Of a stretch of 64,000 nucleotides of DNA, positions 4,301 through 41,559 are shown in pieces (within the stretch, counting starts at the first letter, position 1; each line of letters opens with the position of its first letter). The DNA is from Pelomyxa schiedti. Its lineage: Eukaryota > Protista > Evosea. The stretch covers positions 62,312-126,311 of the forward strand of contig JAHLWZ010000626.1 of assembly GCA_020536535.1 (NCBI GenBank). Reading direction: 5' to 3'. The position numbers and the translations under genes are program-made. The notes beneath the pieces are model-generated. The model was given only the letters and a program-made list of their open reading frames with translations, ran no database searches and was not told the DNA's origin.

Positions 4301-5690
4301 CGGCAGTCACTGGTTTGGCAAGTACATCATGAATCAAAAGTCGGATACACTTGCACAGCTTCACCAATCCAACTTGGTCCGCTTCACTGCTTAGTAGTCA
4401 ACAAACACAAAGAAAGAACTCGTAACAAAGGTTTTTAAATAGGGAAACAACCTCACTTTTTGCGTTGACCTCAGGGAACTGGCAGACATGTCATTCCTCA
4501 CAGACAAACAACGTGGAGAACAGTGTATGGCAAGGCCAAAAAAGGTATTGTGTCTACCAGGGTGTTGACCGGTAAGATAGCACTGTTTGTTCATGCAAGC
4601 ATTTAGGGCATCCAGTTCCTCTAAGAAAATTGTATTCACTACAGTCATTTGAACTCAAAACAAGGTACCTTTAGAGTGTGCTATGGGCACAGCATTTGGC
4701 ACCACGGAGGCAACCAGTAAGGACTTTAAGAGGGCACGAGGTGCGGCAATAGGTTTTTCCGCCCATGGGATGCCACCATAAGGGAGCATAAGCTGCAATT
4801 CGCGAACCGGTGGAGCTTGTGAGGCAAGAGGGGCAAGGGTCGAAGCCGTGGTGGTCGAAGTTGTAGATATTGTGGGAGCAGGATCAATCACTGAAGAAGA
4901 AGAAGATGACGATGATGAAGAGGCAGTGCTGCTCACACGAGAAGACTGCATGGTCGAAACATTGACAGTTGTGGAAGGTGTGGAGGAGTTTGGTGACAAA
5001 AATGTGACTTCGTCCATTGTTGGGTCATCGTCGAGGACAATGACGCCAGAGGACAAGGAACTGGCGCTCATGCTGGGCCGCGACCCCATCATTGGGGTGC
5101 CGGTGCCCCCTGTGTGCGCGGGTTGCACCGCCGCGGGAGAATTATGGGAGGCGGGTTGGCGCTGCGACGAAGAGGCCGAAAGGTCCGGCGCGACCTGGGG
5201 GGAGGACTGAGGGACGCGGGAAGGCTGAGAATACGTGAAGGGGGCCAGAGGAGGCGGGGAAGAAGAAGACGAGTCCAGGTTGGGCCTCGCGTCCACCGCC
5301 CCTCCTCCCATAATCCCAGGCTGTGCCGGCGGCGGCACCCTGGACGCCGTCGGCTGCGGCAACGTCGACCTCCCATCAGACACCAGCGTCATAGTCCCAC
5401 TGGGCGACGCCGACGCCTTTGACTTCACGGCAACTTGCTGAGGTTGTTGCTTTTGCTGCTGCTGCTTCTGAGGCCTTGGGTGGTAGACCGGGTAGGCGAC
5501 CGAGTTCCTCTTGAGGACCTCGCGCCAGTTGTTGGACGCGGACGTGCCCTGGGCGGCGGTCGCGGCCGCCGACGCGGCGTTGCTGGCCACGGTGGTCGCG
5601 GCGCTGGCCGCCGCCGTCGCCACGGTCGAGAGCAGCCCCGACGCCGACCCCGCCACGCGCGACGCAAACTGGCGGAACGTTTTCTTGGCT
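1368..5690 (-). CDS. Large multi-exon putative E3 ubiquitin ligase: Ala/Ser/Gln-rich N-terminus, helical core, C2H2-like finger, C-terminal C3HC4 RING
   Basis: Exon chain can be spliced in frame through ORFs 4655-5656, 4391-4648, 3518-4102, 2905-3504, 2493-2921, 2101-2418, 1995-2234, 1368-1991. RING CVVC...LPCGHQATCERC...CPLC at the C-terminus; CKTLECGASFTSRNKLFVH finger. Start codon unresolved. Confidence 0.75.
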
Positions 5691-28551: not shown

Positions 28552-30371
28552 TCAAAAATTGGTGTAGAGGGAGGAAGGAGTGGGGAAGGGGTCTTCTCTG
28601 GATAGAACGAGAACAGCGTGTTGATGGGACATGTATCCTTTAATCAGCTTGTTGTAAATCAGGTTGGCAATGTGACACTCCAGGTGGTCTTTGTCCACCT
28701 CAGTGCACGAGTCCCAAACACTTACAGCATCAGCAGGCTTAACAACTGGCCGGTGTGTGGTGGAATATCTCAGTGCGGCTTCAAAGACTCGGAGGAACAT
28801 TTTGCTCTCCCGGCCACTTAGAACCCAGCACTTTCGGAACAGGGTGCGCATGACCATGCACTGCAGCTGCTCCAGCACAAGAAACACTCCTTTTCTGACA
28901 AACAGGTCCCCATAATCCTGGAAAGCCTGGAGCATCAAGCACAGGTCACCAGTTCGGACGGCCTGCACAATATCTGTGTAACAGTCCAGGCCGTGTGTCT
29001 CAAGTAATCCACGAGGTGGCATTTTCCCATGAAGCATCATTACTGGTACGAGGTAGAACAGAGACATCCTCCGGTTCTTCTTACTACTTTCGTGGCAGTT
29101 TGTAAAAGCAGTAAACAGTAATTTCTCTGCAATCGGGTATTCCCCATCAAGGAGAGCAGAGCGACCTCTGTAGAATTGGAAGCACACATCCTATTTGATG
29201 TGTTTAGAAGCTATTTTCGGTCACACAGGAAAAAAAAAAAAAAACCGAGATTATGTACTTGTATCCACAGATTATTAATATTAATGATATGTGTGCATTC
29301 ACACACGTGTGTGAATGTTTAAAACATGTACATCAGATTTGTGAAGAGATGGCACTCCGTTTGTGTACTTGTCAAGAGTTTTCCCCAGACGATTTCTCAA
29401 GGCAGTTAAACCGAGTCTCTGGAAAATTTATGATGAAGTATTAGACCAAATAGGAATATTGAGGAATGTGTAAGTGCACATACGAAGTAAATTTTGAATA
29501 GGTGATTTGAAAGTGGAAGAAGTGCGGCCGTCTTGGACGATGCGGCATCAGTTTTTCTGTCAATCTGGCAAGTCTGCAAACAATGCGAGATGATTCTCGC
29601 TGCATCACTCAAGTAAGTGTTTTTATTTGCCTTTCTGACAACTTGGACTTCCGAAGCAGAGGATGCAGATGTAGAAGTGGAAGTGGAAGTGGAAGTGGCA
29701 GTCGAAGTGGAAGTGGGTGTAGAAGTAGAAGCAGATGGAAGCGGGGAAGCGTTGGCGGCGGCAGTTTCCTCCAAATCAGCGGCTCTGCCCAGCAAGCGGA
29801 GGTCGGCGATCGATGTAAGGAACGCCGGCATGGCCCACCCGTACCCCTGGCTTCCCATAATGTCGTTCAGCTGCTGCGCCACCACCGTCTGGTGCACGTA
29901 CGCCACCCCCAGCGCCAACTTGGCCTTGCCCGGCCCCGACGCCGAGGACGCCGAGGACGACGCCGACGAGGCCGGGGGGGACTTGGCGTGGGCCAAGATG
30001 CACATGCAGCAGAGGACGTGCTCGGCGCAGGCGCGGGCCAGGGCGGGCTCCATGCGGGCGGAGAAGAAGGCCAGGACGGCGTCGCTGGCGGCGGGGCTCG
30101 GGGGCACGACGCCGTGGGCCGCCGCGGCGGGGGAGGCGGAGGCGGAGGGGGCGGAGAACTCGCGGGGGAAGCCCTGGACGGAGCGGGCGCTGGAGTCGAT
30201 CTGGCGGAGGCGCGCGGCGAGGGGGGAGGAGGCCGGGGCGCGGCGGGCGGCGGCGCCGACGTCGCCGCCGTCGGCGCGGCGGTCGATGGGCAGGGACAGC
30301 ACGGCGGCGAGCTGCTGCCCGTCCATGTTGTCGTTGGCTTCCATCACCTGCTGCGCGATGTTGTTCATCAT
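28552..30371 (-). CDS. PCID2: PCI domain-containing protein 2 / CSN12 / Thp1-like
   Basis: LPLSNHLFKIYF, YRGRSALLDGEYPIAEKLLFTAF, KNRRMSLFYLVPVMMLHGKMP, LECHIANLIYNKLIKGYMSHQHAVLVLSREDPFP; low-complexity Ala/Ser/Thr insertions in the GC-rich first exon. Confidence 0.88.
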
Positions 30372-30663: not shown

Positions 30664-33600
30664 ATGCAGTCCCCTACACAGACCGCCACCGGCGTCGGCG
30701 ATGCGCAGCTCTCACAACAACCCCGAGCATCCCGTAGGCCCCCACGTCCCATGTCTCAATTTGGTCCACATCAGACGATTGTCACAAGAATTCGCGAGAT
30801 CTTGGGCCAGTACCCTGCTGATCACCAGATGCTTTTTGTGTGTCACCCTCCTTCTTCAGCTATTAACTTCCAAGTAACTCTTTATTTTTCTTTGTTACAG
30901 GAGTTATTACAAAATGCCGATGATGCGGGTGCCACTATGTTGAAACTAGTTCTTGATGAACACCACTACAGTGGGTCTTTTATTTTATTTTAGTTTATTT
31001 TGTAAATGCTATTACCAGGATTCCCTGTGGACTCTGTGGCAGCACTAAATGGGTTGCAAGAACCTGGCCTCGTGGTATTCAACAATGCCCAGTTCACCCA
31101 GGAAGACATAGAAGGAATTCAGAGTATTGGTGACAGTGTGAAAAAAACCAAAAGTGAGAAAATTGGCCAGTTTGGCATTGGATTCAACAGCATGTACCAC
31201 CTGACAGACACCCCATACCTACTATCTGCTGATTTTGTTGCTGTTCTTGACCCCATGCCAAAATTCTGCAGCAAATACAGTGAACTTCCTGGTGCTCGCT
31301 TTTCCCTTACTGAACTGACTGCCCCTGAAAATGACTATAGTGAGTTGCTTCAGCCATTCTGTGCTCACCTGTTTGGGCTGAACATATCTTCTGGAGTGTG
31401 TGAGGGCACTGTGTTTAAACTTCCCTTGCGGACTTGTTGTGAAGAGGGTGTGAGCAGAGAGGTGTTTTCCACTGGCAGAGTAAGGGAGCTCTTTCGCACA
31501 TTTATTGATGCAGCCCCACAAGTGTTGTTATTCCTGAGGAATGTGCGCACTGTTGAAATTGGAGTGTTGGAAGAAAGGTCTGACAATATACAACCATTTG
31601 CAATTGTGTCAAAAGATATCCAACAACCACCACCTTCTTGTGGTACACTCCTTACACTTACATCTTCTCTTACAAACCAATCGCCTTTGAGCAGACAGTA
31701 TATTCTCCATCACAATACTTTCAGTGGAGACTGCATTGAAGTCTCTTCTGTAATGGAAAAACTTTTAAAAGCGAGTGTCACTGGGGAAGTCAGGGCTATG
31801 GCCTTTGGGGGAATTGCTGTTCCCCTCCCTTACTCAACATTGCCTCACCCGGGAACAGAGGAGTTGTTGGGTGGTGTGAGTTGTTTCTTGCCCCTTGCCA
31901 GATGCAAGAGCCTGTTCAATTTCATTGTGAATGGTGCCTTTGAACTCTCTTCATGTCGACGTGATCTTCTGAGGGAAAGAGGCCCAAAAGCAGAGTGGAA
32001 CTTGATGATTCTGAAGAGCGTTGTTGCACCACTTGTTCCGCAGGTTCTCAGCGAAGTTGTCAAGCATTGGCCTCCTGGAGTTCCATTTTCCACCCTGTGG
32101 GAATACCTTCCAAGCCATGACGTGGCTGGGGAGCAATGGACTCCGTTCATAAAATCTGTCTACGAGTGCATCAGTTCGCATTCCAACACGTTCATGGTTC
32201 CATCCTGGAAAGAAACCTGGATTCTGCTCTCTGATGCTATTGTCATTTCACCAACAAAAAGGAACAACCTCGAACAATCATCCTCCCTGTCAGTGTTGTG
32301 TGAAGCACTTGGAGACACAGCAGTGTTTGCCCCAAACCACGTTTGGGTGGGCTTTTTCGGCAACAGCAATAACAACACGACCAGCACCACCCCAACAGGA
32401 GCAGGAGGAGTGACAACACTAAGCAGCAGCAGCCTGCGTGCAGCACTCAAGAAATCCAAGTTCGTCCCGCCCAACGCACAGCACGCCGGGATCTTGCTTG
32501 AGATGTGCCTGGAAGATGAGAATTTCTCCGAACTCACCGGGTTGCCCCTCGTTCCCTTGCTCGATGGGAGGATGTCTGCATTCAACAACGGTGAAAGGAA
32601 GCAAATAATCTGCAAGACCAAACTCCAACAGGATGTGATCAACTTCCTGGAACCATCATCTGTTGTGGACACAGAATCACTTCCCCAGAAAGTCACGGTT
32701 GTGTTGCAAACAAGGTTCAAGGAGTTGAACCTGATCCCATTTTCCCTCGAGCACTTGGCAACCCTCTTGGAACGCATCAAGGGTGTGAGAGCATCACCCC
32801 AACCAACAACAACAGGAAACAACAACCACCTGAGTTCACTCAACCTTCCTGATGGTTTCTTGGAGAAGTTCTGGGATCTTCCTGACGATGACACGTGGCA
32901 CAGATTCAACGATTTCCACCTCGTTCCCGTTGTTGGAGGGAAACTTTGCACACCATCGTCAAAGCCCCTTCTCGTCGAACAACAAGCGAACATGGAATCG
33001 GTCACTACGCTGGCACAAGTCACTGAAGAGCACGGCGTTTTCTTCTCCGCCTTGCAAGGCAGTTTCACAACGTTGAGGAAGAACCTCACACCGTTTTCAT
33101 GCCAGTCTCTGGCAAGGGCTCTTTTGCCAGTGGCACAACTGCTGTGCAGTTCACCACCACAAAACCTCAGGTCTGTTGCAACGTTCTTCGAGGAACAACT
33201 GTCCAACTCTGACTGCAACAATGTGGAGACGCAGGAAACTCTGCTGAGGCTCCCCCTGTTCAAGTTGTCGTCGGGAGGATATCACGCACTCTCAGATCCG
33301 AGGTTCAAACTTGGGCCAAAAGGTGTTGACGCACGTCTCCTCCCAGCAGAGTACATCTGCGACTCGGAGTCTGGCCAGTTGGCGGAGCGACTTAAAGTTC
33401 TCAGAGTGTCTCTTTTGGACTTTTACATGTATGTCGTTCTCCCAAGCTTCCTCACCATGGACACCAACCTGCGCGAGAAAACTGCGTTGAAGATCCTCGA
33501 AGCGGACTTCCATATTTTCAAGAGGGAGCATCTCACCACTTTGAGTCAGGTTCCTTGGGTCACTGCTGACAACAATGAGCCCAAGCGCCCTTGTTCTCTA

Positions 33601-36600
33601 ACTTTTAGCTCTCCTGAAAATCTTGCAGTTGTACCATCTGGAAGTGGGTTCTATCCTGCAACACAATTTTGTAAAGCTCATTTTAGCTCATTTCTATCAT
33701 CATGTGGAATGTCTGAGTTATTGTCTCCCCAAGCCCTTAGGAAGCAATGCCTGACTTGTCAAGATGCCAACTTCTCAGAGGCTTTGCTCAACTATCTTCA
33801 AGCCCACAGCAATATACTGAATACTGAACTGGACGATGCATTGAATTCCACTGCATGGATTCCATGCAAAGCAGCACCTCCCAATTCACCATGGCGTTAT
33901 ATTGAGATTACAGAGCCCTTTTTGAAGCCTTCTTCATTGATCCTCCAGACACAGAAGCACTTGGGTTTTGCCATTCACCCAATTTGTGGATTTAGCATCG
34001 TCTCTGAGGTGCAGTCTCACCTTAATTTCAAGAAATTGACAACTGAGGAGATAATATCACAGCTCACCAAAGTTGCAGCACAATTCAATTCAATGGCAAA
34101 AGAGCAACAGCAAGAGCATGCACGTAAGGCTGAAAAGGTGGCTACATCCATTTTCCAAAAACTCCAGGAGAACCCATACTTTGATCACATCCCTCCAATT
34201 TCTGAAGCACCAATAATTTGGACGGGCACATGTTTTGCAGAACCTTCACGAGTTGAAGTAGAGAAAACTTCTGGTCTCCACTTGGAGCCTTTTCTTTACA
34301 CTGTGCCACACACACTTATCAAATACACACCTGTGCTGAGGAAACTTGGAGTGGTGGACACGTTCACCCTTTCTCATCTCATTGATTTTGTCAATAGTAG
34401 TCTTGGTCCCCATTATCAAAACCACCCACTTCCCAATGACGTCTTGAACATAGTGAAGCATGTTCTCCAAAGCATTTTCTCACAGCAGGATGCTTATGCA
34501 ACAAGCAACTCCAAAGTCAAGTACATGTTAACATCAGAGTCTATGCTTGCACCAATTGCAGATGTTGTCTATGATGACTTGAAAGACCATGCCTTAATAC
34601 TTGAAAAAAAGCTTTTGGACCCCATCTTTTCGGAAGATGCCGCTAAGGTATTTGGTGTTACTTTACTTGGAGAGCATCTACAGAGTTCCATTTCTCAAGG
34701 GATGTCATTTGGGCAGCATGTGGATGTGGTCAATGTCATTCAGTACATGTTGCGAGACACACCATGTGGTCCACGCATTCTGTATGAAATTTTGCAGAAC
34801 GCTGATGATGCTGGGGCAAGTGTTGTAAAAATCATGTTGGATTGCTTCACATACAGTTCAGAAAAACTACTTCATCCATCTATGCAACCTTTTCAAGGAC
34901 CTGCTCTTGTGGCATATAATAATGCTATGTTCCAACCAAGTGATTGGAATGCAATCCAAACGATTGCATCAGGAACCAAAGAGAGTCATCTCGGGAAAAT
35001 TGGACGCTATGGCGTTGGGTTCTTGTCATGCTTCCACGTCACCGATCTTCCTTCAATTTTATCAGGTGACACTCTGGCTTTCTTTGATCCTCTTTGCACA
35101 CATGTTCCACTGGCTTCACACTCATCTCCTGGGCGCTGTTACAAATTGAGTGGGGACAGGGGCACGCAGTGCAAACAGAGTTATGCATCCCAGTTCGAGC
35201 CTTACAAGGTACGTTTTGGCAGAACCTTTTGGGTTACCCTCACAACATGTTACAACACAGACCTTTGGATGGGATGGAACCAACTTATCTGGGACTGTGT
35301 TGCGCCTTCCTTTGCGCCAAGGAACTTTGCCAGACCATAAAAGTGTTGTACAAACTTTTTTGAACGGTATACCCATGTTTCTTTTGAATGTTATCTCACA
35401 AATTCAGCCAACACAATCAAGGGATACTTTCATCAATTTGCCACTGCAATCGAGACCTCTATCCTGTTCCTCAAGAATGTCCGGTCTGTTCAAATAAGTG
35501 TGAGAGAAGCAGATAGTACAATAAGCTTTTTGCACTCTACGACATGCACCGAGTTACAACCAGAGATGAGAGATCCCTTACTTCAATTTGTTGGCTCAGG
35601 AAGTTTCATGTACGGTGGCAGAAGGGACTGCACAAGAGTTGTTGAGGTTTCTCAAGAACAGAATGAGTCGCCATCTTCTTGTCAAACATGGGTTGTTGCA
35701 GAAGCAGTGGTTGTGGATAAGAGAACACAAAGCCTTGTCCAGGCAAACAACGAGAAGGGAATCTTGTCCTCCGTCCCCTGGGTTGGTGTTGCAATACCAG
35801 TTAAATGTATGTTATTTCCCTGAGCTCTCCCTTTGATGTCTCACTTGCATTACAGCTGCTCAAATTTTGACCCCACATGCCACCCCTTTAGGCACAGTGA
35901 ACTGTTTTCTTCCCCTTCCCGAAACAACCACGTTGCCTGTTGCTCTGAATGCCCTTTTTGAACTTTCCACAGGCCGGGAAATAACTCAATCAATAACAGA
36001 TTCTATGTGGAACAAGGAAATTTTTTCTTTGATTGCTGAGACATATTGCCACCTTTTGGAATGGTTCAAAGAGCACACTCCTATTTATGATAGACAATCT
36101 CTTTTTTCTGTGATACCTGACAGAACCGATCGCTTTCATATTGCTGAATCAGTGTGGGAAACCCTTAAGAAGAAAAGAATTATTTATAGTCTCGTAACTG
36201 GCACCTGGGAACTTCCTTCCACAGTAAAAAATTTACAACAGGAAATTCCTCAATCTATCCACACCTTCTTGGTGAATGATCATCTTCCCTTTGCGCAAGT
36301 ACCTACTGCAATTGCTTGTCACCTGGGAATTGTGGCATTTGATGCAACTGTTCTAGCCAAGTACTTGTCATTACACACATTTTCTCAGGAAGATTTTTCC
36401 ACTCCAAATACTGTTGCCGTGCTTCACGATTCATTGCGCTTTTGTCTGCAAGCCCTGTGTGTTAATTTTCCAGTAGTAACACACAACAGCATTACCCGAT
36501 TAAGTTCCAATGCGGGACTGGTGTATGGCACAAGTGACGCTACAATATTAGAAGTTGTGAACAGTTCCGCAGCATCTCACATTGTCGATGAAACATCTTC

Positions 36601-39600
36601 TGATATTCTTTTGAGGCAACGAGTGCCACAGCTCGGACTTCTGGGATCTCTGACTTTCGAGTGGGTTCTTGCGAACTTGGAGGTGTGATGGATCTCTTTT
36701 TTGTTTCTTTGGTGTTAGGTTGACAATGGGTTCAGGGTTGCAAAGGTGCTGTTGCTGGAAGAAGAAAATGGAACAAGACTCAACAACCCATCACGTGGTT
36801 CCACAAGTTATTCGCGGTATTGGACAACCTGAATTGCAAGACTTTAGTGACGTGCCAAGACGCCATCCTCCCGGCCAGTGATGGTTTTGTGTATTGCCCA
36901 GTACAAGCACAAGAAGAAGTGATTGAGTGCCCAACCTTTGAAAGTGATGAGGTATTTGTGAAAGGTTACAATTCTCAGTTTCTAACTCAATCTATCAGGT
37001 CCCGCAAATTTTGGACTGTTTGAGCTTTCCCATCATCTCTGTCACAAATGAAACATATTTGACGTTTTTACGAAGATGCAAGGTGCTTCAACCTTTCACG
37101 GTCAAAGGCCTGATTCACGCCATGGTGAAAAACAGAAGTCACCTGCTGTGGGTAAACATCACCAATGAACACGCTGGATATTTGCTCCAATACATCGAGT
37201 CGAACTTGCCGTTGGCTCCATCTTTAAAAACAGAGTTCATGAAAACCGATGAGCTGGGGTCTCTCCCTCTTTTCGTCTCTGCACAGACCGGACAACGTGC
37301 AGCCCTCAGACCCAACAACAGCAGTTGGCTCATTCCCCACGATTTCCCTCAGAGCCTTCTGCAAGTGTGTCCAAGAGATTTCCTTCGGGACGCTGTCATC
37401 CAACCAAATTCAGTGAGTCCCAAGTTGTTTCACTTGTTGGGAGTTCAAGGAACAAAGTGGTCAGAATTGATACAATCTCTGTGTTTTGTGCTTCACCCTT
37501 TGCCAGCTGATTTACTCTCTGACTGGCAAACTTTAATCCTTTCCCATGTATTCAATCTTCACCCCAATGTTGCTTCTGTCGCATTTGTGCCTTCAGATGC
37601 GGGAACTGTGGAAGCCCCAGCGAATTTGTTTTCCCCTGAGAATGACCTTTTCAAATTGGCTTTCAGAGGAACAGACAAACTTCCGCATCATGACAGTTAT
37701 AAAAAATGGAAACCTGTACTTGACAGGCTCACGCTTGCGCAATTCACACCAACCAGTGCTCCAATTGTGGCACAGGCTGTTGTCAACCTGGAGGATCTCA
37801 ACGCAAAGCGTGCTGGCTGTGTCTTGATTATGAAGGAAATCTGTTGTAACTCTCAAATGAAGGCAGTGTTCTCCAGCTTAGTGGGAATACAGTTTGTTCC
37901 GTGCCAATACCAGCTCCCACACAAAATACCGCTTCTAAAGCCCCTCTTAGAAACAAAGCCCCAAGGCATCATATTTTTATCTCCAAAGGAATGTGTCCGA
38001 TCAAACTGGTGTTGTTGGACACAGGTCCCTCAGAACCTTTATGATGACATTACCTATAGTTCATTTTTGCCTGAGTGCAAAATAAATGATGTTCTCCAAC
38101 ATGCAGTGACCCTTTCTCAGTTTGCACTTCAGGAGGGCCATGACCAAGCCACTCTCTCTCAGATAAACTCCGAGCTCCATTCTGTGGCAAATCATGTCCA
38201 TTCATTTTTGCAGTTCCAGAGGTACACAACATCCGGCACCTGGAGTGTGGCTTTTCTGGTTGAAACGAAATTCATTCCGTCATCCAAGGTTTTCTCACAA
38301 CTGAAAGAAGAGATTGATGGGTTCGCATATATACTCCCAGACGAGTTTATAAGTTTTTCTCATTTCTCTGCAATCATTGGTTTGCAGAGCCTGCCTTCAA
38401 TCAGTCAAGTATTCAACGAGCTGGAGACGTACAGGGAATCGTCACAATTTACTTGTGACGACAAACAAAAAATTTCGAAGCTCCTGAGTCTTTATGTTCA
38501 GTTACTTGGAAAACAAACTCCCAATGGGCGAGTTCTTGTTCCTGCAAACGAGTGGAGTTGCATGCTGAGGGCTCAAGACACTGTGTATTTCGACAAGGAG
38601 AGCTGGCATAACGTCATCAACCAATCCTTGGTTCCTCTTTGTTCTGTGCCTGTTGCTAAAGAAGTTGGATCTCAGCCGTTAAGCCAGTCAGTTAAAGAAG
38701 TCTCACATATTCATGGCACTTGTGCCAACGTGGCATTACAGGAAATCGTCACCTCCAGTGAGTTCTGCAAATCCCTTTGCGCAATACTGGATCACATGGA
38801 CTGCAGTAGACTTAAAGAGATTGTTAAACAAAAGCTATTGGAGTTGAAGTCTTGGGAATTCTTGTGGGTAGAGCACCTCGACACAAAATACTTATTCAAG
38901 GGCTCTGATGTTACTATCCCACTCACGTACATGGGAAATGCTTTCCCTAAATCGTATGTGTTTGACCAAACGGCGAGAAAGCTTATAACCACAAATGAGG
39001 ACCCAGGCACTTCCTTTTTAGCAAAGGAGTTTGCCGACTACCTCACATTGGCCTTTTCAGAGGCTCCTTATTTCATTTCCACCATGCTCCAAGCAAAAAC
39101 CAAGCATCACCTCCTGCAGACCATTTCCCAGCTTGGAATTACCGTGGGTGTGCACAACATGGCTCGAATAGGTGAGCCAGTTCTGAACTCAGAGCACACT
39201 TTTATACGCCCCTGCTTGTTTGGTATCAGTTTTGCTCAAGGGGAGGTGGTTACTTTTGTTGACGAAAAAGAGGAATGGAGGTATGGTGAGATTGTTACTT
39301 CATGTAAAACGGACAATCCCTTGCTGCAAATAAACCCACACAACCGTATCCCGCTTCACGCATCGCTCATTCTTCGTATGTGCCACCCTGAGTATTCCGT
39401 GCGCCAATGCCAACAGCCAGCAAACACAAAAGAAGTCCTGATGTGCACACATAGTCTCGTTGAGTCTCTCAGCACTATGACTTTCAACCGAACCTGCTTT
39501 GCACTGAACAGAATGAGTGATGTACTCAAAATATGTCGACAACAGGAACCAGAGAGACAAGATGTCGCCGACGCACTCCGCCTGATAGAAACACTGTACG

Positions 39601-39893
39601 AGCGCCTCCCATCACTTCTGAAGTCCTGCAAGATACACGCCGATCTTCTTCGGCTGGTCATTGGCTACCTCTACAAAGAAGATGCGCTTGCACTCGGCAA
39701 AACATGCAAGTGGATTTACAATGCCATATTCGCACCAGACTCACGCCTAAAAACACTGTACAACAGCCTCCAAGCAAGACCAAGGCCCCCGGTGCCCCCC
39801 ACCTATCATTCTCCCACAACCCCCACATATTTCCCTCCAATGTACCCCCGTCGCGGTGGTGGTTGCAGACACTGCCCAACACATTGCCCCTAG
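30664..39893 (+). CDS. Sacsin-like protein with two HSP90-like (GHKL) sacsin repeats and a C-terminal F-box-like motif
   Basis: Repeat 1: RIREILGQYP, ELLQNADDAGA, VFNNAQFT, KIGQFGIGFNSMYHLTD. Repeat 2: FGQHVDVV, EILQNADDAGA, AYNNAMF, KIGRYGVGFLSCFHVTD. Also GTVFKLPLR/GTVLRLPLR, CFLPL, FAQGEVV; tail IHADLLRLVIGYLYKEDALALGKTCKWIY. Confidence 0.9.
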
Positions 39894-39977: not shown

Positions 39978-41559
39978 TTAATTGGTGCTGAATAGAACTA
40001 TGGTAAAGGCGCAAGTGATGTCTTTGGAACCAAGCCACACTCGGTGTTGTAACCCAAGGTGTGCCTCGTCAAGAGGAAGCATCACTGCCTGCGCCAATAC
40101 ACTTCTGAGGAGGTCCCAGTGTGCCACAGTGATTTTCGGGGGTACTACCATCGGAATGGCTGTTGCCGGGGATGCATTTCCTGGCCATAGAACAAGTGCC
40201 GATTTGGGGCTTGGGGACCACACCCAGCACAGTTGGTTTGTTCCACGGGTGGTGTGCTCCGTTATTGCCGCCTGGATTTGGTCAGTGATATCCGTCCATC
40301 CGGTCTCTGGGAGTGTGATTTCCACAGTCCACTGGCCCTAATAGGATGTAAGGAATTACAGCTAGGTAATTAATACATACAACGATGTCGGATGTTTCAA
40401 GTACGGTTACAACTGTCCGAGAATGGCCACAGCCCCATCCGCCACTATCTCTGTGCTCTACCAAGTAGACACCTTCTTGATCAAAACTGTGGGAAAGAGG
40501 GATAGACAAAGTTGGGCCCACAACAGCAGTTTTGGCATGAGCAGGCATATCATCGCTACCTTGTTTTGGAGTGTTAGAAGGAAGATGAAAAACCAATAAG
40601 AAAACTCCACGACGACATGCCTTCATAAGTGTGCTGAAAAAATTCGTCATTCCATTTTTCAGGTATTAACGCACTCAGGCTATTCTCCATTGCTCGGGAT
40701 GCAACTTCACTCATGATGGAAAGGGAAGCACTGGTATGCAGAATTTCAAGGTGGGCTATCCCGGAAAGTGGCTTGGGTGAACTCCAGTGATTTCTCAGCT
40801 TAGGGAATATGTTTAGAGCTCCTCTTGGGCTGCTAACCACATCACGCCAATGAAGGGAAGGACCAGAGAGCACGTGAAGAGTTGCAATGATCTCGATATC
40901 CCTGGCCGAACGGGCAAAGTTGCACACGTAAATTCCTTGCCAAGTCCCGTGATCTTTGGTATGCATCTTGAATAAAAAAAACGAGAGAAAGGTCTATCCA
41001 GCGGGACACACTCCATTCGCCGTTCAGCACAGGCAGAGACAAACTATGTCCAATCAGAGAGGCACTCGCACTGCCAGCAGAATCCCCACACCTCTGTGTC
41101 ACCTTATTCATAGCAGCATGCAAGTCAGTTCTCACTGTAGGGTCACAGTTCTCATTCAATGTCCTGAGTCCCCAATCAATTTATCGTCATCTAATACGCA
41201 AAGCCCAAACGTCCAACTCCAAAAAACCAAACATACAAAGCAGCACTTGGGGTGTCACAAAACAAGTGCAGAACCGCGGCGTTTGCTTTTCTCACGGCGG
41301 ATCGCGCTGCACCACCGCTGACAACGTCTTCCACTCCCACAAGTGCGCAAGACCCTCCCCCAACGCGCACGCTTGCTCGCCACCGCAAGAACGGCGACGA
41401 TGATCCTCCGGAAGACGATGTAGTTGCCGTAGTCGTGGCGCTCATGAGATCTGATGCAATCACCGGGTCGTACCACGATCTTGTTGTTGTATTTTGGCCG
41501 CTTGTGGCCGAGCAAAAGGTGCATAACACTAAGAGAATGGGGAGCAGATCTCCGGTCAT
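39978..41559 (-). CDS. Hypothetical secreted/membrane protein with N-terminal signal peptide
   Basis: MTGDLLPILLVLCTFCSATSG at 41559; successive coding-like exons (ORFs 40842-41159, 40574-40966, 40282-40650, 39978-40325) separated by GT-AG introns; no family recognised. Confidence 0.6.

Follow-up and report, generated by a model that had tools for sequence, protein, structure and literature searches.

A candidate F-box-derived motif at the C-terminus of a sacsin-like protein of Pelomyxa schiedti

Loss of sacsin leads to the ataxia ARSACS (autosomal recessive spastic ataxia of Charlevoix-Saguenay), and the molecular role of sacsin is not yet settled. A single gene of the anaerobic amoeba Pelomyxa schiedti, located at 30664-39893 on the plus strand of the 64,000-nucleotide stretch that we analysed (assembly GCA_020536535.1, contig JAHLWZ010000626.1, positions 62,312 to 126,311; hereafter the window), encodes in 8 exons a sacsin-like protein of 2,958 amino acids (aa), and its C-terminal tail raises the question whether a sacsin-type scaffold can by itself serve as the substrate receptor of a Skp1-Cul1-F-box (SCF) ubiquitin ligase. 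The organism is known only through single-cell genomics (PMC8887013). We argue that the best-conserved element of the tail would be a divergent F-box of about 35-40 residues, comprising the part of helix 1 that follows from its acidic residue on, and helices 2 and 3. Descent of this motif from an F-box is, in our estimation, somewhat more probable than not; that the tail is a working C-terminal F-box, which would make the sacsin-type HSP90-like scaffold itself an SCF substrate receptor, is a prediction that we put forward tentatively. The evidence for the F-box reading, drawn from sequence comparison, is statistical.

The F-box-like motif of the C-terminal tail

Throughout this work the homology and profile searches took as query either single exons or the stored protein of the public annotation (P0011). 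When the last 330 residues were searched against 1.84 billion representative proteins, the matches were the gene's own product and one paralogue only, KAH3761119.1 ('Sacsin protein [Pelomyxa schiedti]', 3,069 aa; hereafter P0012), encoded on another contig of GCA_020536535.1. From end to end, over 330 aa, the tails share 43-44% of their residues. Within the last 400 aa, conservation peaks in the 22-residue window LV..YL.KE.ALALG.TCKW.Y, where 16 of 22 residues are identical (73% vs 44% overall); this window is the centre of the F-box-like motif. A preliminary description of this DNA had quoted the motif as C-terminal, and its text is indeed present there. The motif and a nearby LP-containing element are located as follows.

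39633-39737, plus strand: F-box-like motif (text of the preliminary description at 39633-39728; stretch aligned with the F-box profile at 39642-39737)
39606-39620, plus strand: LPSLL (LP.LL in both paralogues), eight residues upstream of the motif in the paralogue alignments

The strongest support came from a profile-profile comparison. As reference we used a profile (A9) of natural F-boxes from giant-virus and metagenome contigs, collected with a DNA pattern of L-P-[DE]-E-I-L-x2-I-[FL]-x2-L, filtered for open frames with the helix-3 signature and reduced in redundancy to 43 sequences; two more pattern scans of viral sequences, one with helix 3 and one with LPDELL as its anchor, returned 0 matches. 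At E<=1e-3, 41 of the 43 members pass Pfam F-box-like and 39 pass F-box, and the A9 profile retrieved 41 sequences from the PDB, all of them F-box proteins, with SKP2 first at 5.6e-16. Aligned to A9 with hhalign, the pair of Pelomyxa tails scored 26.0 (P 1.1e-5, probability 81.6%, 33 columns), in a register that agrees with that of Pfam and that of the preliminary description. None of 770 controls reached this score: the maximum was 21.3 among 250 column shuffles, 18.9 among 370 windows from five other sacsin pairs, and 21.2 outside the tail among about 150 windows along the gene/P0012 pair, where the top three windows all fell in the tail. A Gumbel fit gave P 6e-5 per window and about 0.005 protein-wide. 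The second-best match to A9 lies between the SACS domains (P0011 1008-1035 / P0012 1151-1178, window about 34027-34110; score 21.2, about 50%), covers template columns 14-40 only and is probably due to chance. By this profile-profile test, the resemblance of the tail pair to F-boxes exceeds chance. Taken singly, the P0012 tail scored 26.4 (85%) and the tail of the sacsin-like gene 17.9 (P 8.7e-4, 23%) in the same register; that the latter tail resembles F-boxes beyond chance when judged alone is indicated weakly.

Two further methods pointed the same way. On every slice of the P0012 motif, Pfam F-box-like (PF12937) was the top or only match (12.2-16 bits, E 0.01-0.16), spanning profile positions 7-44 of 47. 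Likewise, in the search for ESM-feature neighbours, F-box clusters were best for both tails (0.92 and 0.91), the ten best family-bearing matches were all F-box, and 28 of 30 matches for the P0012 tail were F-box clusters. Pfam, ESM features and the profile-profile test thus converge on one family and one register. At the place of the helix-3 signature the tails read TCKW(I/L)Y, in which Cys and Lys align with F-boxes, the Trp comes one position early and Leu/Ile stands at the Trp position. The fit to the F-box pattern that the preliminary description had claimed holds in part: over 12 positions 8 residues are identical and 2 conservative (I for L, V for I), while the Pro is replaced by His and the Trp comes one residue early. 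The claim of an F-box-like C-terminus is moderately borne out, by an indirect route as far as this gene is concerned: the paralogue has a sub-threshold match and the pair an hhalign probability of 82%, and the gene itself has no Pfam match.

Several of our results weigh against an F-box, and a number of them argue for a different explanation, namely that an amphipathic helical element for docking or dimerisation arose in this lineage and is linked to F-boxes neither by evolution nor by function, its Leu-rich helix-turn-helix being the best chance match to a very large and loose family, and that the tail acts via other partners, for example through paralogue pairing, PPxY motifs or the Cys/His cluster described below. 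We regard this as a possible but less favoured explanation. It accords with the Pfam searches, in which six tail slices of the sacsin-like gene gave no F-box (PF00646 / PF12937) at E<=10. The P0012 match lies below the 24.3-bit cut-off, and since seven unrelated families reached E<=0.09 among 28 slices tiled over both proteins, that match taken alone is at noise level. Smith-Waterman alignment to a plain F-box consensus was not beyond chance either, as 9 of 200 shuffles reached the score and other sacsins equalled it. The choice of reference mattered as well: with a pandoravirus-rich reference (A8) the tail reached 27% and tied with the control windows; within A9 the viral-only subset gave 3.5% and the metagenome-only subset 88%, and omission of six members with atypical helix-3 residues gave 55%, so that the result is reference-dependent, with probabilities of 55-88% across the A9 variants and 3.5% for the viral-only one. 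The ESM overlap amounts to just 105-124 shared features of 256, a level rated by the tool as 'chance or distant'. Finally, hallmark residues are missing or displaced: neither paralogue has the LP with which helix 1 of an F-box begins (IH in the gene, RN in P0012), and the Trp stands one position early (CKW, not CKxW). On the other hand, this explanation has to contend with the agreement of three methods on family and register and with the 770 controls, not one of which reached the score of the tail.

The remaining observations against an F-box concern the Skp1-facing surface and searches of structures. The LP dipeptide is the usual Skp1 contact of F-boxes, and the LPSLL element stands at the wrong distance from the motif for the canonical F-box LP. 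In the paralogue alignment, conservation of the motif is lowest where helix 1 would begin to face Skp1, with 2 of the first ten residues of the motif identical. Searches of the PDB by phmmer and hmmsearch with the tail, the P0012 tail and their profile found nothing at E<=10, and a regular expression for canonical F-boxes found none in the window and two Pelomyxa loci. AlphaFold2 with two-sequence alignments gave a predicted local distance difference test (pLDDT) score of 41 for the last 402 aa and 52 for the 76-aa motif, with helices predicted at pLDDT 30-58; fold matches of these models (Foldseek vs PDB, VIA-align wide, Atlas shape) were generic helical folds with no F-box among them, and neither the models nor their matches were used as evidence.

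If the motif is indeed derived from an F-box, the two paralogues need not have kept it equally. It could be a relic that has lost Skp1 binding in this gene while P0012 keeps a working copy, in which case the protein would serve as a chaperone scaffold without a ligase function, or would assist or regulate P0012, for instance by a PPxY-WW contact. The unequal hhalign results for the two tails (17.9 / 23% for the gene vs 26.4 / 85% for P0012) fit such a loss, as do a 5-residue insertion after helix 3 in the gene's copy and the presence of PPxY in this gene only and of a WW domain in P0012 only; the 73% identity of the 22-residue core, on the other hand, speaks for selection that still acts on one and the same surface of the two paralogues. 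We consider a relic unlikely. Our estimate for a working receptor is lower than that for F-box descent because the gene's copy is the more eroded, having no LP and carrying the insertion: that this copy is a working Skp1-binding receptor is predicted with some hesitation.

A different ligase connection was also weighed. The stretch A-L-G-K/R-T-C-K-W-I/L-Y could be read as a BC-box (L-x3-C-x3-hydrophobic) through which the protein would bind Elongin C and act as a receptor of the Cul2/Cul5 type instead of the SCF type, and by direct reading alone A-L-x3-C-x3-Y is present in both paralogues. The last position is Tyr, however, and not A/I/L/V, the two paralogues have no Cul-box (LPxP or similar) in common downstream of it, and no slice gave a Pfam SOCS-box match; we consider this very improbable. 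Our preferred reading of the motif remains a divergent F-box.

Gene structure, transcripts and SACS domains

Between 30664 and 39893 the plus strand carries a chain of long open reading frames with short frame breaks between them, and the window is eukaryotic. Open reading frames and splice sites define the following exons.

30664-30837, plus strand: exon 1
30901-30970, plus strand: exon 2
31019-35208, plus strand: exon 3
35261-35366, plus strand: exon 4
35408-35806, plus strand: exon 5
35856-36682, plus strand: exon 6
36736-36951, plus strand: exon 7
36999-39893, plus strand: exon 8, including the stop codon

All seven introns are GT..AG, measure 41-63 nt and keep frame continuity, and the exons total 8,877 nt, equal to 2,958 codons and a stop. 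The public annotation of GCA_020536535.1, JAHLWZ010000626.1 gives this gene as P0011, a protein of 2,881 aa under the NCBI name 'zinc finger protein [Pelomyxa schiedti]', which starts with the ATG at 31006 and is identical in downstream length to the eight-exon model. Absent from P0011 are the 5' exons 30664-30837 and 30901-30970, in which the first N-box is encoded; because these two exons were missed, the deposited model is without the first N-box and part of the first ATPase-like domain. Alignment with the paralogue confirms the two extra exons: the end of exon 1 lies opposite P0012 residue 145 and the start of exon 2 opposite residue 146, with identities of 88% and 79%.

The preliminary description would have fallen if transcripts spliced the last exon differently. 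The genome was compared with RNA-library contigs from single-cell RNA-seq of the same study. Contigs colinear with the genome cover 37971-38145, 38499-38811, 38971-39155, 39280-39674 and 39698-39876. This evidence consists of contigs and not of reads, shows presence only and covers the last exon. In two of those RNA runs the 43-nt intron of the neighbouring gene (40337-40379) has been removed, which shows that the runs contain real RNA. Within the motif region just 23 nt are uncovered, a gap too small for an intron. In the contigs at 39280-39674 and 39698-39876 the last exon is not spliced differently from the gene model.

That the protein belongs with the sacsins, as first described, is borne out by its two SACS domains. 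Pfam SACS (PF25794; cut-off 32.8 bits) matched the first piece of the gene at E 1e-9, the stretch 31006-35337 at 1.1e-91 (two stretches, 307.5 bits) and P0011 at E 4e-105 (351.5 bits), all of which lies well outside what chance would give. The domains and their boxes are placed as follows.

30760-31580 (approximate), plus strand: SACS (HSP90-like GHKL) domain 1, Pfam PF25794, spanning introns 1 and 2
34723-35517, plus strand: SACS domain 2, spanning introns 3 and 4 (P0011 1240-1473, profile positions 3-239 of 247)
30901-30930, plus strand: first N-box, ELLQNADDAG, by direct reading
34786-34815, plus strand: second N-box, EILQNADDAG, by direct reading
31165-31185, plus strand: first G-box, GQFGIGF, by direct reading
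35002-35022, plus strand: second G-box, GRYGVGF, by direct reading

The limits of domain 1 were estimated from P0012, where the domain extends over 236 aa. Among the 120 best relatives listed, the second SACS domain has its nearest counterparts, at 31-41% identity, in the sacsins of echinoderms, amphioxus and fish and in plant sacsin-likes. Both the N-box and the G-box are intact in each repeat, as the preliminary description had it. Judged by these domains, the protein belongs to the sacsin family and has two repeats, each being an HSP90-like GHKL nucleotide-binding module with intact boxes.

Other elements of the tail and neighbouring genes

By its location, the tail would take the position of DnaJ and HEPN in animal sacsins and of the RING in plant sacsin-likes. 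The description of animal sacsins as ending in J and HEPN domains proved correct, since the animal relatives carry DnaJ and HEPN C-terminally; in this gene and P0011 no piece gave a Pfam match to ubiquitin-like, DnaJ or HEPN at E<=10. A 'dead J-domain' in the tail was considered and rejected, as there is no DnaJ match and the HPE at 39381-39389 is not kept in the paralogue. We also rejected a degenerate RING, for the Cys/His spacing does not fit (C.HCP.HC only) and no RING family matched the tail. Three further elements of the tail can be recognised.

39240-39296, plus strand: short conserved block F..GE.V...W.YG.V, weakly shared with plant RING-type sacsin-likes
39795-39845, plus strand: Pro-rich linker with two PPxY motifs by direct reading, PPTY at 39795-39806 and PPMY at 39834-39845
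39861-39893, plus strand: terminal Cys/His cluster GC.HCP.HC followed by the stop, conserved in both paralogues

The first block, in which the paralogues are identical at 14 of 22 positions, matched plant RING-type sacsin-likes in hhalign at E 3.7e-4 (probability 36%, 24 columns). We rejected a homology that would take in the entire tail and the plant C-termini, as it amounts to just two short blocks (E 0.03 and 3.7e-4). The F..GE.V...(W/L).YG.V block may, by its occurrence, stand for a C-terminal unit that sacsins outside the animal branch have conserved, and it is possibly a small beta module (39240-39296; 4561-4600 in the plant protein P0023, where it precedes the RING). Neither PPxY is conserved in P0012, and the WW domain occurs in P0012 only; through the PPxY pair the sacsin paralogues may bind each other, or this gene's product may recruit a Nedd4-type ligase. 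The WW domain of P0012 directly follows an unannotated Cys-rich reading in an exon pair, L001:6142-6234 and L001:6292-6474, which reads CSIC..C..CPSC..C and then ECF..GCPLCHKHF and for which the NCBI model uses another frame; when the pieces were read separately the second matched Prok-RING_4 at E 0.011 and WW at 3e-9, making the pair a candidate RING- or ZZ-like finger. As to the terminal G-C-x-H-C-P-x-H-C of both tails (39861-39890 in this gene), no family match was found for the cluster, and its Cys-Pro followed by His is reminiscent of heme-regulatory or small metal-binding motifs.

Upstream of the sacsin-like gene lies a divergent minus-strand gene at about 28552-30371 with a faint PCI label only, in which a domain scan (29409-30371, minus strand) found none. 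Downstream lies a convergent gene with three YjbQ units, whose 3' end is about 85 nt from the sacsin stop. Neither flanking gene bears on the sacsin/F-box question. The 43-nt intron of the YjbQ neighbour (minus strand), together with the 41-63-nt introns of the sacsin-like gene, points to uniformly tiny introns in this genome.

Ligase modules on sacsin scaffolds

In the mechanism that we propose, the SACS repeats and the long helical regions would hold a client protein, while the C-terminal F-box would dock on Skp1-Cul1-Rbx1. The scaffold would then be the substrate-selecting subunit of an SCF ubiquitin ligase, and chaperone-like recognition and degradation tagging would be fused in one chain. 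CHIP/STUB1 passes clients held by HSP90/HSP70 to a ligase, and does so in trans as a separate co-chaperone with TPR and U-box; in the Pelomyxa protein, by comparison, the chaperone-like module and the ligase adaptor would share one polypeptide.

Animal sacsin (SACS / DNAJC29) likewise has repeated SACS domains with HSP90-like N-box and G-box, and both proteins are very large, mostly helical scaffolds; the SACS domains of echinoderm and amphioxus sacsins are 36-41% identical to the Pelomyxa one. Animal sacsins measure 4,100-4,600 aa and have DnaJ and HEPN at the end, whereas the Pelomyxa protein has two repeats and a different tail. Closer in design are the plant sacsin-like RING proteins of 4,700-4,800 aa, which combine SACS repeats with a ubiquitin-ligase module at the extreme C-terminus; in Ceratodon KC19_1G000400 (P0023) the RING occupies residues 4753-4794 of 4,800. 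The plant terminal module, however, is a C3HC4 RING with direct E2 recruitment, while the Pelomyxa F-box-like helix motif would adapt the scaffold to Skp1-Cul1. A third arrangement is seen in Glomeromycotina, where P0003 (Entrophospora sp., 1,134 aa) combines SACS with BTB (PF00651) according to precomputed Pfam labels only; its BTB adaptor serves Cul3, not Cul1.

F-boxes are not confined to the N-terminus. In KDM2A/B, DIA2 and FBH1, which the A9 profile recovered from the PDB, the F-box follows a large functional region, and in FBXO32 and FBXO40 it lies near the C-terminus. The F-boxes of KDM2A/B, DIA2 and FBH1 nevertheless score above the family thresholds, retain both LP and Trp and as a rule precede leucine-rich or WD40 substrate-binding repeats, unlike the Pelomyxa motif, after which come only the Pro-rich linker and the Cys/His cluster.

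The architecture had been put forward as undescribed. As far as the fusion itself is concerned this holds, since no sacsin/F-box fusion was found in the literature searched or among the 120 best relatives listed. That a sacsin scaffold can carry a ligase module, on the other hand, is not new, given the plant RING proteins and a fungal BTB-SACS protein. Going by domain content, the ligase module on a sacsin scaffold is a recurring theme, met as RING in plants, BTB in a fungal protein and WW with a RING-like finger in P0012. The recurring pairing, with a probable F-box in this amoebozoan, would argue that the general job of the scaffold is to present clients to ubiquitin ligases. If the F-box reading is true, F-box proteins would gain a new type, a ligase receptor whose building blocks are GHKL ATPase modules, and the sacsin family would have been wired repeatedly to ubiquitin ligases, with ubiquitin-dependent client disposal as its core business, possibly in human sacsin too.

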